A stretch of DNA of 63,529 bases, counting the filler, from Lenisia limosa (taxonomy: Eukaryota > Protista > Breviatea): NCBI GenBank assembly GCA_001655205.1. It is 13 parts of 13 records of this genome, joined end to end, with 100 filler letters (N's around TTAATTAATTAA, not from the genome) between each part and the next. Parts side by side here need not be neighbours in the genome. Positions count along the whole stretch, not along the records: positions 35,174 to 39,413 come from LPNZ01003404.1; 12 more parts are not named here. One strand, 5' to 3'. Position 1 is the stretch's first letter, and every line of letters starts with the position of its first letter. Below, in pieces: positions 468-39,413 of the stretch. Both the position numbers and the translations under genes were made by a program. The notes under the pieces were generated by a model that saw only the letters and a list, made by a program, of their open reading frames with translations, was not told the DNA's origin and ran no database searches.

Positions 468-3400
468 AGAGGCCATGAGAGTATGGAAGGATGACGTGAG
501 GTCTGCAACATCCTGCTGAGTTCTCCAGGGAATTGCCGCTGGAATTAATGAAAGAAATGCGGAGAAGTGAGAAGACTGTTTTAAGTGAAATTCGAAAAAA
601 GGAGAATAAATTGATACTATTTGAAGAACTAAGGAGAGAAATAAGAAAGGAGGAAAATGAGAAGGAGAGAAATGTGAAGAAAGGGGAGAAATAAGAAGGA
701 AGGAGAGTAATTGGATTCCACATCCTCAACTTTCAACCCCCCACATCCAGAGTCAATGGCCGCGCAAAGGTGTTTTAAGAGGCCCACGACATTCGTTGAA
801 TTCGGCGTGACTCCGACAAAATGCGTGACTGCTTGGCTGGAGGGGGAGAGGTAAAATTGGAAACTTTATTAAACAAAAAAAAAATAAAATAAACAATAAT
901 ATAAAAAAAGAACAAAAAAAAAAGAGAGAGACGAGCCCTTGCCTAACACCGCAGAACCAGAGTGAACGAGACGAGGCGCACTCTGAAGAAGTCTAGAAGC
1001 AGAAGCAGGTTTGCTATGAGATTTCCCCCCACTTTTTCTCGTCTTTTTTCGTCCATCGGTCAGCTACCTTCGCCAAAACTGACGATTTTCCGCTACCCGC
1101 GTCGCCAACAACAATCATAGGCTTCCTAAAAAGGCAAGTTAGCAAAATAATGTCATTTTAATAAATTTTAAAAACAAAAAATAGGCATAACAATACAACA
1201 AAACTGAACACGCACTCCCCCTCTCCCCACACACAGACTTTCCAACATTTATCCGCTCTTAAGTGCTACCCCCCTTTATATTCTCCCTATACTTAGTATA
1301 TTTATACTCACAACACTCCCTCCCCCCACATTCCGGTATTCTCCGTCGTCATGGCCAAGACAGAATCGACAAGATCCTGTCGACCCACAAAGGTGCCAAC
1401 TCTCCGTCCGCCAAAGGCCGCGTGGTTCTGAACCTCAGCTGCATGGACTGAGGGAGGGGTTAAGAAACAAACGTAAAAGGAGCACAAAACTAACTAACTC
1501 TGTTGGTTAATAACACACGAGGGTTGAGCTCCCATAAAAAGGAATATGTGAGTGACAAAAAAAGCACAAAATCAACTCTGTGCAACACAGTTATAGTGAA
1601 GGAAATTTTGCTGAAGAGTATGAAGAATTTATGGATGGTTAGGTTGGGAAAACGAAAAAAAAATTCAAAAAATTCAATGCATAAGTTCTTAAGAGTTGAT
1701 TATTCCTCTGGAGTAACCACGATAATTTTGAGGTTTCCAAGATTCAATTCTTTTACAAACATTGCTTGTTCCTTATGATCTACCTACGGTTAGAAAAAAA
1801 GACCCGTTTAAATATCGATTTGTCAATCGACCTTGACATCTTTGGCATATATCCATAATCAAGGACTTTTATTGTTTTCCATAATAATGTAGTTGTGATC
1901 TTGCTAAGGCCATCTTCCACAAAGATACCATTATTTTCCCTAGTCGTCTTTCTGGTGATCTTCGTTCTGGTAGGAATAGAGCCCTCGATGCCCTCAAGCG
2001 GAGGACTATGACTCGTCAACCCTTGTAGATTTGTTACTGTTTCTTTTGTAGCGTTATTCACAATAATAAAACCTTAAAACCTTCCACCGCCATTCGAATT
2101 GTGGAGAGGTCGCTTTTGTGAGTTAAAAACATGAGCTTACAAGGACTGGTTTTGTCTGTTTTTTCTATCACCAGTTTGGACAGATCATCATGCCTGACGT
2201 TCATGGATTTAATCAACTCTAAAGAACCCGGGGAAAATATTACAAAAAAAAGGGAAGAACCAGAGAAAAGTCACGGTGGGACCAGTACACACAATCACGA
2301 TGAAAAAAGAAAATTATTACTATCTATTTTTTACAAAGACAAAAAAACACAAGTTAAAGAGAATATTGTCTGTACCCCCCCCCCCCAANNNNNNNNNNNN
2401 NNNNNNNNNNNNNNNNNNNNNNNNNNNNNNNNNNNNNNNNNNNNNNNNNNNNNNNTTGCTGGAAACTCGGCATCAATGGCACCCCATAAATCCTCGGTAA
2501 CTCTATCTGCGAAAGCCTCTAGGTCAACTACCATAGGTTTGCCCTCGACAATCCCTCCCCTAAAACCTCATTAGAGTTGGGAGATCTTATCAAAATATTA
2601 GGGCTCCGTGCAATTAATTGAAAAACGAATTTCAAAATTTGAAATAGTACATATTCCATTTCAGACACTTTAAGGTGGTGGTGTCAGGCCATTTTTTTTG
2701 GGGGATTGAACATGATTTGACCACGCAATTACAATCATATTCTTTCACAGAAATCAACAGATGAGCCAAATAAATGGTAAAAAATGCAAATGTCAACCTT
2801 CCAAGAGTTTACCTGGCGGAGTGTTAAGAGCATCAATATCAAGGACTATGAAAGACATGGGGCAGGGTGATCACGAATAAGAGCAAAGACTTGTCGGAAA
2901 TGACACCAAAGTACTAATCTGTGCCGTAAAACTGCTGAGAGGCGGGGGGTAAGAGACACGAGTTACCCAACGAAAAAGGACAAAGAAAACACTAATCACT
3001 TCTTGAATACCTCTCATGCCTTTAAATATGCTTCTATTAACTAATCATCATGCAAAACTAGAAAAAGAGGAAAAAACTCGAGAATTCTCTGAGCGAAAAA
3101 ATTGGCGCGCTGATGCCAACCTTAAATGCTCTCTGAACAACTCGAGATTGTCTCTTATCTAGTTTAATCCAGTGTAGAAGCATATAAGAGAGAATCTGAG
3201 AGTGTTCAGAAGCGACTTGGGGTTTTTCTTTCTTTTCTCAACTGTTTCTTAAGCCTCTCTCTTCCCCCATAAGTCTCTTAGTGGTTTTATTTTACAGTAT
3301 TGTACTCTAAAGTGTCTCCCTTCAAGCATTTGCGGATCTTCGTTATCATCATGTCCCAAGCCTTTCGCGATCCTTGATTTTGATGATCTTCAACCCCAAT

Positions 3401-35040: not shown

Positions 35041-35559
35041 CTGAAGACGATGTCAAAAATTGATGTGTGAGGCNNNNNNNNNNNNNNNNNNNNNNNNNNN
35101 NNNNNNNNNNNNNNNNNTTAATTAATTAANNNNNNNNNNNNNNNNNNNNNNNNNNNNNNNNNNNNNNNNNNNNATCTGCCATTTTGACGAAAGAAAAAGT
35201 TATAGTAGTAGTGCTTCCCTAATGATGGTGATGAAGGTGCTGTTGATGATGATGATCATGCTAATAGGCTAATAGGTAGAGATAGGGCTTCACTTTGGTT
35301 CGAAATAGATCTGTAAAGTATCGATATTTTTCGAGAATTTATCGAGAAATTCAGTCTTTTTCGAAACAAAGTGAAGCCATAGGTAGAGATGATAAATAAA
35401 AAATAGAGTGTATTTGGCCGAAGCTGTTGACAGCATCACACTTATCACATGAATTAACCCAATATAATAGTAATGAGACTGAAATTAATACATTAAAATA
35501 AATAAAAATAAAATAAAAATAAAAATAAAAAATAATAATTAATAAAAACAACAAAAAAG

Positions 35560-38500
35560 TAATAATAGGGGTTACCTGAGCCCAGCCAAGTCCGATCGTT
35601 TGCCCTTTGTTCAGGTATATGGGGTAAGTCACGCCTGTAGTGGTTATATATTTTATGATGTAACATGTAGTAATTATATGTTTTTGATCTCCAAAAAATA
35701 CCCCATACCCATTGTCCTGTCTCCTCCTGGTCTGGGACCATAGTCAAATAGTTCCAAGTATTCTCCATTGTAAGGAATTGCACCGTCCAGGCAAAACTGA
35801 GTTAAATATCTTGAGGATGAAGGGGGTGACTAGAAGTGTGAGGGGAAATGCATATTGAATAAAACCCTTTCTGTTGTACTATGAAAAAGGAACTACTTTT
35901 ATGTTAACTACATTTATGGTAAAACCAATTAAGGTGGTTCAGTCCTTTTTTAGTTTTGGAAAACAATCTTAAAGTGTGGTAAGTAATTAAAATGAGCCTT
36001 CGGGAAAATTCTGCAGAGTAGTTTTTCTTATTTTTATCCCATTATTACATCATTATGATTTGCCTAAAAAAAAAAGTCCCCCGCTCTTGATAAATCCCTC
36101 CTGCATACAATATTACCCCCCTTTGCATTTTATGCGGTTTTTTTTTCTCATAAATTTTCCATTTTTACTCCACCTTGCATCACAATCCCCACTCCTCATA
36201 AATACCCCCATTCCCGCCAACAGTAGATCGGACGTTGATTAAGTACAGGCCGGTTGAGGAGATGGTAAAGACTCCATTTGAACCTAATACAAGGTTGTCG
36301 TTCAGTATCCCATATCTGGGGGGGGGGGGGNNNNNNNNNNNNNNNNNNNNNNNNNNNNNNNNNNNNNNNNNNNNNNNNNNNNNNNNNNNNNNNNNNNNNN
36401 NNNNNNNNNNNNNNNNNNNNNNNNNNNNNCACCGCATCCCATCACTAGTAAAACGAAGGAAATGTCGATGAAGAGGTACTATAAGAACCGAATAATTTGA
36501 AACTCCAAACAATCAGAATCAACTTGATTGCCTTAGGATTTGGGAAACACACAAGGGTAAAAAAAGCCAAATGTCAGCGGGGGGTAAAATAAAGAGAATA
36601 TAATCAATTGGGGAGGTGTAAGAGTTTTCCCAAAGCAACACAGCACAAAACAAAAAGCAACTCGGAGTCTCTACATTTCAAAAGAAAAAATTGCTGATAT
36701 TTACTTTTCCACTTTCAGCTAAATCCTCGAAAAATATCGATATTTTACGGTCTTTTTCGGAACGTAGGGAAGCCCTAGTGATAAGTCTTTAAGGTATCCC
36801 CATTTATTTATTTCTCTGTTCAAGACGCACTCATCAGCCACTGCTTCATTTGGCATTGCACGGGAGCCGCAGACAGCTGAATTGGTAAAAAGGTGTGATG
36901 ATGCTATTTTATAGCGTTCACGTCCAAAACAAGTTTAAACGATGCTCACAGCCTTTTTTTGTTGTTTAATTTGACTGGAACAGTAATGAGTGATAGAAAT
37001 ATATATGCTCAAGGTCCAAAATTATGTCGTTATTTCGAATTAATGTCGTTAATTATTTACGGTCGCCAAATCAGCTATTCCCCTTCAAAACAGTAATATA
37101 TTTCTGAGATATACACACTTAATTTGTTTATGAAGGAAAACAAAGAAAAATATACCTTTCAATTTTTTTGCAAGATCAGCACTTTATCGTGGAAAATTTT
37201 TTAGCGCCACGCTTGCGCAATTTTTTTCAGTTTATGCTCGCATTTTTCTCATATGTCCTTTTTTACGAGTTAAANNNNNNNNNNNNNNNNNNNNNNNNNN
37301 NNNNNNNNNNNNNNNNNNNNNNNNNNNNNNNNNNNNNNNNNNNNNNNNNNNNNNNNNNNNNNNNNNNNNNNNNNNNNNNNNNNNNNNNNNNNNNNNNNNG
37401 TATATTCGGAATAATTTTGGTGAAATAAATATGATTCATGGGGTTCCTACTTCCATCTATTGCAAACGACGACGCCGTAACAGAATGCAACTCTACAAGG
37501 GTTAATCCAGTAAACTATGGCTAGTCAACTTGTGAACTGGCTAGTCCATATCAGTGGTAGGATCCCAGCCATCTTTCACTCCAATAAAAATATACAGTGG
37601 TTAATTCCCTGAAATTCAGGGATTTGACAATATTAGACAAAGTCAGTTCAGTAATTACCAAACCGAACCGAAATGAAACACTATTTCAAGGTTACTCTCT
37701 GATTCGTAAAATGCTCCGTAATGAAGGATTATGTAAATATTCAGCAAAATGGTTAATCCTTCATTTTTCTTATATTTAGAAATACGCAAGGGAAAAGCCG
37801 ATTTTGTACCCTCTTGTTCCCTACAGTCCCAAAAATAATTCCTCGATAAATCCTCGACAAATATCGATATTTTGACGGCCATTTTCGGAATGTAGGGAAC
37901 CCCAATATGTGTCCGGTGAATTTTGAATGATGTTCGGAGCTTTGACTATACATATAGTATTTATCATATCTCATAAACCGGGTTTGTCAACTTGCGAGCG
38001 GACTCGTATTTTATTTGTGCTTCTTTAACTATCGAATACAAAAGATAATTAGCAATCAGAATACAAAACAAGGTCCACACCATCACGCTTATAAGAGATA
38101 TGGGATTATAGTATTATATTAATTCACCCAAACAAAAGATAATAGTCACATAAATCCCCACCATTAGTGGACAACATTTGAATGGAAAGGCGAACGGAAG
38201 AAATGGAATCTGCATCAGCTGTGCACGATGTGGTAACACTCAGAGCTTGTCCCTGAATTGTAGTGAACCAAGACGACATACATATTCTGCGGTTTTTTTA
38301 CTATTTCCAGTGTTTTCCAGGATATTTTGAGACAAAAAAAAGAAGCTATAAAACGGGAATTTATATAGCTATATATCAAAAATCGCGTAAAAGCAGTTTT
38401 AGTGCCGGTGGTTTGTGGTAGTTATTGACATGTTTGGCCTACCTTCAGGAGTGTCAGAAGAACTGAACCGGTGTGAATCTCCTCGTAACCAAATCCCGGG

Positions 38501-39279
38501 GCTGGGGGAGTATTAATTTGTGTGGGAAAATAGGAGCATGCTGAAAAATAAAACACGCAAATACCTGCATTTGAAAATCTATGGATGAGTAAAAAAAAGA
38601 CAACAAAGGCGATATACATGGAGAATAATAATAAAAAAGATGTTAAAGGTTCTGAAATTGGCCAGAAGAGACCCACTTAAACTGTAAACAGCTTTGATGA
38701 AAAGGTCACAATTCTACTGACCTTGGGCCTGCGGACGACTCGGAATGACACCGTCCACCAAAATGTAAGCAGAACATACAGTGGATGCCGCGCTTTGAGT
38801 GTGAAGAACAGAAGACAAACAAGCGGTAAAATGGGAACATTTTGGCTATGAGCTCAGCACTATCCCCCCACCCCTCTTAGAAAAAATAGAATCCTCAACA
38901 AAAAGAAACACGCAGCCTTTCCTTCAAACAAAAAAAAGAAAAAGACAAAAAAAGACAAAAAAATAATCAAAAGAAACACGCAACCTTTCCTTTAAACAAA
39001 AACAAATAAAAAGACAAAAAACAAAAAGACAAACTGAAGAAAATGAAACACGCACCCCGTTCTTTTTAAACAATAACAGCCTCGGACCACCCCGCCCCAT
39101 GACTCTTGTTTCAGACTTTATCTTTATGATCATCGTTTCAATAGAGATGCTATCTCTATGACCCTAGCTGGACCCCCCACTGTTCGCTTGTATACGAAAC
39201 AGAGGCGGAGTAGACTCCGTCAAGAGGAATGACCAGAGTGCTCGAATCGACACAAATAAAACCGCCACATCCGTTTGGT
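35560..39279 (-). CDS. Protein with two or more C1q/TNF-like beta-sandwich domains, partial
   Basis: Exons GGFICVDSSTLVIPLDGVYSASVSY, EIHTGSVLLTLLK, SNGVFTISSTGLYLINVRS and GVTYPIYLNKGQTIGL resemble repeated C1q-like motifs (F..P.dGvY; sv.l.L.kG). Confidence 0.5.
38901..39058 (+). repeat. ~68-bp A-rich tandem duplication (2.5 units) in an intron
   Basis: The motif GAAACACGCA recurs three times, twice followed by (G/A)CCTTTCCTT. Confidence 0.7.
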
Positions 39280-39413
39280 CTGGGAGGGGAAAGTAAGATA
39301 GGAAAATTTATGAAACAAAAAAAAGGCCCAAAATCAACGCTGTTGGCTGACAACACACGAGGGTTGAAAACAACATAACAAACAAAGCACAGGCCAGTCG
39401 CTTCTGCAGCATC
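39280..39413 (-). mobile_element. Acceptor cassette copy in the C1q-like gene (cut by contig end)
   Basis: Same core and the same CCCAG acceptor before exon RPNGCGGF. Confidence 0.85.

Follow-up and report, generated by a model that had tools for sequence, protein, structure and literature searches.

Stacked non-coding repeat modules at an intron 3' end of Lenisia limosa: what stands before the AG of the cassette

Did a repeat in an intron of Lenisia limosa (Eukaryota; Protista; Breviatea) insert behind an older, still intact 3' splice site? The question is raised by positions 36316-36480 of a stretch of 63,529 nucleotides (nt), filler included, hereafter the window, which joins 13 parts of 13 records of GenBank assembly GCA_001655205.1; the piece concerned, positions 35,174 to 39,413, comes from LPNZ01003404.1. 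Coordinates count along the whole stretch, and features are on the minus strand unless stated otherwise. Here a short repeat, the cassette, begins with TGATGGG, closes with a C-run and an AG and is followed by a putative exon, Bx; directly before it stands another AG. An earlier note on this DNA, whose strings are indeed present on the minus strand exactly as it gave them, took the upstream AG for part of an intact-looking acceptor, at or just after which the cassette had inserted, possibly with duplication of the AG, so that the intron was extended; as an alternative it suggested that (G)AG is simply the element's own 5' end. Our answer is that the cassette belongs to an abundant non-coding repeat, copies of which make up the final ~150 bases of many introns. 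Judged from sequence conservation, the AG at 36446-36445 is the end of the cassette's own leader and not a duplicated target AG, and the supposed older acceptor appears to be the cut-off tail of a second repeat module, not an intact and independent splice site.

Read 5' to 3', the intron end before Bx consists of CATCGACATTTCCTTCGTTTTACT, the upstream AG, TGATGGGATGCGGTG at 36444-36430, 99 N at 36429-36331, thirteen C at 36330-36318, an AG at 36317-36316 and ATATGGGATACTG, which starts at 36315; the cassette can be read over 30 nt only (Table 1). For comparison we used a second assembly. One open reading frame (ORF) of the window is present in contig NODE_4393 of ENA assembly ERZ3820729 (here L121), of which L121:1741-3754 equals window 39413-37400 with 100% identity over 2,014 nt and which reaches 1,740 nt past the end of the window piece (39413); by this match, ERZ3820729 is an independent assembly of the same organism. 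Five further contigs of that assembly (L123 to L127) were located through an ORF that reads through another cassette of the window, copy A, to which five further ORFs in ERZ3820729 matched. The census sample comprises these six contigs and the B part of the window, 23,950 nt of AT-rich eukaryotic host sequence; profile matches were counted at E < 0.05 (nhmmer), and gene models were judged exon by exon.

The sample holds 12 copies of the cassette 5' motif and 25 full or partial profile matches, spread over 7 sequences, and 24 of the 25 matches are in gene sense. Complete copies measure 142-148 nt; their first ~90 nt are ~90-95% identical between copies, and they end with a TTTTAC-like sequence, a C-run and AG. 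The single antisense match (3' part, E = 0.018) lies on the plus strand at window 36134-36179, in the intron just downstream of Bx, and also forms an inverted repeat (I3) with 39292-39334. Over its first 15 nt the window copy matches 13 of the 15 bases at L121:1730-1744, and its ending recurs at L124:446-460 as C13 followed by AG; the endings on L123, L127 and L121 are C-rich variants, with GC-richer exon-like sequence after each. Copy A is complete on L121 (L121:1730-1874, 145 nt): it begins TAATGGGATGCGATG and ends CTTACTTTCCCCTCCCAG, with exon A1 directly after it, and is preceded by ATTTCTTTCGTTTTAC, C13 and TGGAG. Copy A had been considered as an 'empty' paralogous intron, which is wrong, as L121 shows that the window piece starts within the copy A cassette.

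That the cassette is a real dispersed element of the 3' part of introns, as the earlier note had supposed, is seen on the contigs. On L125, which carries a multi-exon gene, the intron that separates exons 1981-2061 and 2399-2552 (joined in phase 0) holds cassette copies, and so does the next intron. The first of these introns (L125:2062-2398) contains a cassette, a tail of the second module (U, see below) and a further cassette tail; ~120 nt of other sequence stand ahead of the leader. The intron at L127:4615-4799 is made of 57 nt of other sequence followed by a cassette. In ~11 cases a cassette-type C-run and AG are followed at once by GC-richer, open, exon-like sequence. The exons downstream of different copies are unrelated and lie on six different contigs. 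An Rfam search with the cassette in the window and on the six contigs (E <= 0.1 to 1) gave no match, and RNAalifold on the cassette copies found 0 compensatory pairs and no covarying structure; the idea of a C/D small nucleolar RNA, suggested by a UGAUGG box at the cassette start, found no support.

What, then, is the AG in front of the cassette? Conservation of the cassette extends 5' of TGATGGG into a leader, GTAYGCTGGAG. This leader is complete in six of the 12 copies; two have a C-run and then TGGAG, and one each has GGAG (an internal duplicate), GAG, AG alone (the window copy) or nothing, the last being the copy at L123:2399, which is without any AG. The observation that an AG also precedes TGATGGG-type starts elsewhere holds for the equivalent copies on contigs of this organism: 11 of the 12 copies have AG before T[AG]ATGG. 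Because the conserved GCTGG precedes this AG in most copies whatever the context, we regard the AG as element sequence; the alternative offered by the earlier note is therefore the one that survives, and the AG duplication is not borne out. The base at -3 points the same way: the context is GAG in 10 of the 11 copies, which is a poor, indeed the least acceptor-like, context, and TAG in the window copy only. This TAG results from the loss of nine leader bases that L125:4436-4446 still has, within a segment (L125:4419-4461) that has the same junction of U and cassette with the full leader.

Scored as acceptors, as the earlier note proposed, the flanks upstream of the copies prove pyrimidine-rich; with a single exception they rank at the 72nd-98th percentile of AG sites. 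The upstream AG of the window is at the 91st percentile among the 177 minus-strand AG sites of the piece (scored by pyrimidine content and YAG context), 9 of which score equal to it or above. It is thus acceptor-like but not exceptional.

The sequence before this AG does match the 'second intron-end variant' of the earlier note, and this variant is itself a second, related, dispersed repeat module of intron 3' ends, which we call U. Its core, ATTTCYTTCRTTTT, occurs in eight copies, all in gene sense. At L124:1477-1695 an intron devoid of cassettes has a stand-alone U as its 3' part; there U (L124:1610-1695) ends with TTTTACT and C14, and a C-run and AG are found at L124:1665-1695. Alignment shows that U and the cassette have their last ~25 nt, the terminal box, in common. 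The window copy of U has lost 16 nt internally and breaks off directly behind TTTTACT, so that the C-run and AG of the L124 copy are missing; 'intact-looking' does not describe it. Directly upstream of U stands a degenerate relic of an older cassette core; the block ACCCTYGTGTGTT, shared with copy A, can be aligned with it.

U is followed by the cassette at four loci, and the four junctions all differ: TTTTACT-AG, TTTTACT-GTACGCTGGAG (with the full leader), CATTTTC-GAG and TTTTAC-C13-TGGAG. The sequence directly before the cassette is U in 4 of the 12 copies and the TTTTAC/C-run tail of another cassette in ~3 more. Stacking of intron-end modules is therefore real and recurrent, and the part of the earlier proposal that placed cassettes directly behind acceptor-type sequence stands, without the intactness claimed for the acceptor at this locus.

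In our opinion, two repeat modules meet here, both from a family of short, non-coding modules that lie in gene sense and make up the 3' parts of many introns in this genome. We give this reading, in which mechanism and origin are proposals, a probability of about 0.62. On this reading the intron before Bx ends, 5' to 3', with a decayed cassette core, a U truncated after its branch-point-like TTTTACT, a cassette whose 11-nt leader has been trimmed to AG, and the cassette's terminal box (TTTTAC-like sequence, C13 and AG), which adjoins Bx. This exon-proximal box would provide the spliceosome with a branch point, a C-rich tract and an AG. The upstream U tail, which has no C-run and has an AG 4 nt after the putative branch A, would be a disabled former intron end. 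New modules were probably added to resident intron ends, at the terminal box or within it, either by insertion or through local duplication; the arrangements that survive would be those with a working box beside the exon, and older boxes would shift upstream and decay.

Several points weigh against this reading. At copy A, C13 is preserved in the upstream U and the cassette itself has a weak C-tract, and the upstream C13-TGGAG could still compete as an acceptor there. The acceptor role of the cassette AG is itself putative, and on L125 the frame suggests that splicing may use an AG 11 nt downstream of the one in the cassette. The central part of the window copy falls in the gap, and the density of cassettes in our sample is biased upward because the contigs were fetched through ORFs that read through the cassette. 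Further, insertion is indistinguishable from duplication or recombination with the present loci, and a local tandem duplication of 52 nt at L125:4447/4499 shows that slippage also occurs.

A bolder version holds that the cassette and U are mobile '3'-splice-site modules' that home to the branch-point/C-run box of resident introns, older copies included; each new copy would replace the acceptor and lengthen the intron from its 3' end, and its C-run would pair with a G-run near the donor as an intron definition of its own. Mobility is argued from the near-identical cores dispersed among unrelated genes. Such modules would be an introner-like class that remodels existing introns and does not create new ones, an idea that we hold only tentatively and regard, taken whole, as rather unlikely.

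We are equally reserved about an account that needs no transposition, in which the stacks arose solely from local tandem duplication, replication slippage, or unequal recombination and gene conversion, with exchange between the ~25-nt terminal boxes and the homopolymer runs of neighbouring introns. The 52-nt duplication (within L125:4447-4550), the many internal deletions, the single orientation of all the copies of a contig and the terminal box common to U and cassette all agree with it, as does the resemblance of the exon sets A and B of the window to tandem duplicates, each with U and a cassette. However, cores of 90-95% identity occur on six contigs, in introns of genes whose exons are unrelated, which requires dispersal, and the junctions vary on both partners at each locus. 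We therefore consider it unlikely as a complete explanation.

Less probable again is the model of the earlier note, in which a mobile cassette inserts at or just after an intact acceptor, the AG is a target-site duplication and the intron is extended. Cassettes do stand directly behind acceptor-type modules in ~7 of 12 copies, the upstream flanks are rich in pyrimidines, and before copy A a U with TTTTAC and C13 lies shortly before the AG. In the window the two AGs are followed by nine similar bases (TGATGGGAT versus the exon start ATATGGGAT), and the 11 nt AGTGATGGGAT and AGATATGGGAT on either side of the cassette were considered as a target-site duplication. This repeat is unique to the window copy, and we reject it as a coincidence because other copies keep the cassette start but have unrelated exon starts downstream. 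The GCTGG conserved in front of the AG, the G at -3 in 10 of 11 copies, the copy at L123:2399 with no AG at all and the loss of the C-run and AG from the window U likewise speak against the model. Since the upstream AG and its flank are repeat sequence, they provide no independent evidence for insertion at a pre-existing acceptor.

A very improbable alternative takes the cassette for a conserved first coding exon (start codon and signal peptide) followed by a mini-intron, in a family of genes for secreted proteins, in which case the upstream AG would be an acceptor in the 5' untranslated region (5'-UTR) or for trans-splicing. Copy A does have an ATG-led frame with a textbook signal-peptide-like sequence and GT sites in phase, and six ORFs have a common conserved N-terminus of ~38 amino acids and diverge after it. 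Yet the variable sites are distributed 5/5/5 over the codon positions in both ATG frames, without third-position excess, and copies carry frameshifting indels of 4 nt and larger as well as internal deletions; for these reasons the idea was rejected. In addition, that ATG reads GTG in 8 of 10 copies, several tandem copies occur per gene, and in the L125 gene copies occupy internal introns between exons that can be joined in frame. Gene callers nevertheless make spurious 'proteins' from the cassette, as at L121:1732-1995 (ORFs P0012-P0016), with the common start MGCGAAEATGL; database ORFs with this start are repeat read-throughs, not a protein family.

The gap in the window copy raises the last alternative, namely that a scaffolding artefact joined edges from different loci and that there is no single cassette at 36316-36444. 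The edges correspond to the two terminal 15-nt segments of a single repeat family, correctly ordered and oriented, with a spacing within ~15-20 nt of a full copy, and copy A shows the layout of U, cassette and exon without any gap, so that we give this idea next to no credit despite the 13-base homopolymer at the gap edge and a gap length that is an estimate only. As complete copies measure 142-148 nt and 30 nt are visible, the gap most likely conceals ~112-118 nt of a single uninterrupted cassette, a little more than its 99 N suggest. Exact look-ups of six ORFs near the gap, in search of an ungapped contig of this copy (copy B), matched no record. An 'ORF' of 110 amino acids that spans the gap is an artefact, because N was read as X; the cassette being non-coding, a reading frame across the gap is in any case irrelevant.

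How does the cassette compare with known systems? Introners, the nearest known kind, are transposable elements that generate introns, and some families (Symbiodinium type) carry their own 3' splice site (PMC9860276); they derive from diverse transposable elements (Gozashti et al. 2025, PMC12130899), and the operational criterion for them is similarity near both splice boundaries (Gozashti et al. 2022, PMC9860276). Like introners, the cassette is multi-copy, near-identical, non-coding and placed in introns of unrelated genes, with a strong sense-strand bias, subfamilies, truncated copies and an end that appears to carry a complete 3' splice signal (branch-like TTTTAC, C-rich tract, AG). Unlike them, it forms only the 3' part of the intron, 57 nt (L127) or ~120 nt (L125) after the donor in the few introns delimited, its copies stack behind one another, and any insertion may have remodelled an existing intron without creating a new one. 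No clear target-site duplication was found at the cassette copies; TTTTAC-like bases flank many of them and are not identical within one copy. The ends of the L127 intron have an inverted G-run/C-run symmetry. We file the cassette as an introner-like variant that would remodel intron 3' ends, and not as a member of an introner family, because the similarity misses the 5' end of the delimited introns and no clear target-site duplication was found.

Transposable elements also insert secondarily into existing introns, and an antisense Alu or other short interspersed element (SINE) can supply a pyrimidine tract and AG, which leads to exonisation. In both cases an intronic repeat brings a ready pyrimidine tract and AG usable as a 3' splice site. 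The present element, in contrast, lies in sense and has a C homopolymer as its tract; its AG seems to act as constitutive acceptor for a normal exon and not to give rise to a new alternative one. In teleost introns, GT and AC repeats at the two intron ends pair and bring the splice sites together. The similar feature here is that G-runs of 10-14 in the 5' parts of introns often alternate with C-runs of 10-18 before acceptors; these are homopolymers, however, not dinucleotides, and their pairing and function are putative. Stwintrons are nested spliceosomal twin introns (PMC12403724), and the likeness, which underlies the two-step splicing idea of the earlier note, is a unit bearing splice signals in or next to the splice signal of another intron. 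Most cassette copies begin with a GT-led leader (GTAYGC), which is lost from the window copy; there, TTTTACT(A) fused with the exon start yields no AG, and removal of a GT...AG unit would not rebuild an outer acceptor.

Table 1. Coordinates of the features discussed (window positions unless a contig is named)
Feature	Position	Strand	Remarks
Degenerate relic of an older cassette core	36484..36559	-	nhmmer match to model positions 98-168, E = 0.013
Module U	36447..36506	-	60 nt; alignment A2 with six other copies
AG, last two bases of cassette leader GTAYGCTGGAG	36445..36446	-	nine other leader bases gone
Cassette core, first 15 nt, TGATGGGATGCGGTG	36430..36444	-	identical at L123:461, L125:4112, L125:4447, L125:4499, L126:786
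Assembly gap	36331..36429	.	99 N; adjoins 13-base homopolymer
Cassette 3' end, C13 and AG, putative working acceptor	36316..36330	-	same ending in other copies
Putative exon Bx, beta-strand-like ORF	36206..36315	-	frame from 36314
Cassette copy A, last 134 nt, ungapped	39280..39413	-	exon A1 from 39279; piece begins inside copy A
G/C runs	L121:1313/1712; L124:1190/1682; L125:1606/2299, 3869/4097; L126:1651/2099, 2382/3065
G/C runs	L127:956/1227, 3694/4078, 4617/~4790; window 36318-36330

A supposed relative of the cassette outside this organism, a contig from a termite-gut metagenome (L101), was rejected, as it diverges from the cassette consensus right after a 17-mer. It came from a metagenome scan with this 17-mer, which has more than 120 chance matches. 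L101:50-590 is an antisense foldback remnant of a mariner/SETMAR-like transposase C-terminus, inside which C8-AG is followed by the 17-mer. The flanks of L101 gave no significant alignment with the cassette beyond the 17-mer, and the cassette is not classed as a fragment of a mariner-type transposon; the 17-mer and the preceding C8 run are common to L101 and the cassette by chance.

Exon Bx has 36 open codons and then a donor-like GGGG|GTATTT near 36206, and its phase equals that of exon A1 (from 39279 downwards). Exon-like ORFs form two sets, at 39279-38127 (A) and 36315-35700 (B), almost equal in spacing: the exon-1 starts are offset by 2,964 nt and the motifs VDGVIP/LDGAIP by 2,968 nt. They are probably tandem duplicated units or genes that encode beta-rich domains; protein similarity between them is weak (p about 0.01 to 0.1). 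Neither six exon-like ORFs of the window nor eight ORFs from the contigs matched Pfam. For the exon, a word search was likewise empty, and full HMMER gave weak multi-stretch matches to repetitive immunoglobulin-like, SprB and cadherin proteins, with no true homologue.

Homopolymers of G or C of 10-22 nt are very frequent, with 33 runs of at least 8 in 24 kb, and this frequency accounts for assembly gaps at such runs. On the gene strand they tend to alternate, a G-run in the 5' part of the intron and one or more C-runs before the acceptor, and on L121 the two are of equal length (G13, then C13 400 nt on); the alternation may reflect a pairing that bridges the intron. A second gap, at window 37275-37399, is read by L121 for 55 nt, up to a short GTCGTTAATT-like repeat that is also present at 37019-37054.

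Two further repeats were seen. One is palindromic and resembles a miniature inverted-repeat transposable element, with a TATCGATATTT core (window 35282-35382, 36720-36777 and 37816-37906; L125:1455-1557, L127:970-1065 and L127:2954-3052); it matches the mir-1285 and MIR319 hairpin models below thresholds on both strands, as expected of a foldback repeat. The other, GGTGTGGACGGCTTCGGCCAGATACAACC, occurs at L125:2066-2120, 1672-1720 and 3127-3185, at L121:90-150 and, on the minus strand, at ~282 of L127; it once starts 16 nt after a donor GT and may be the 5' counterpart of the intron-end modules. Farther upstream on L121 (560-906) lies a gene start, where a signal-peptide-like sequence begins at an ATG (~629); 10 nt before this ATG stand a branch-like motif, TACTAAC, and CAG, and the short first intron ends with a C-rich AG. 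An acceptor just before the start codon hints at a 5'-UTR intron or at trans-splicing.

If the stacks record the serial addition of modules, the 3' ends of introns in this organism would have been repeatedly replaced and pushed upstream, with the old acceptors left as decaying fossils. Work on introners has centred on the birth of introns, not on their remodelling. Given that dozens of near-identical units sit in different genes, this genome would be a clean system in which to ask how the spliceosome chooses among tandem acceptors, whether a C homopolymer serves as pyrimidine tract, and whether the pairing of G-runs with C-runs defines introns.

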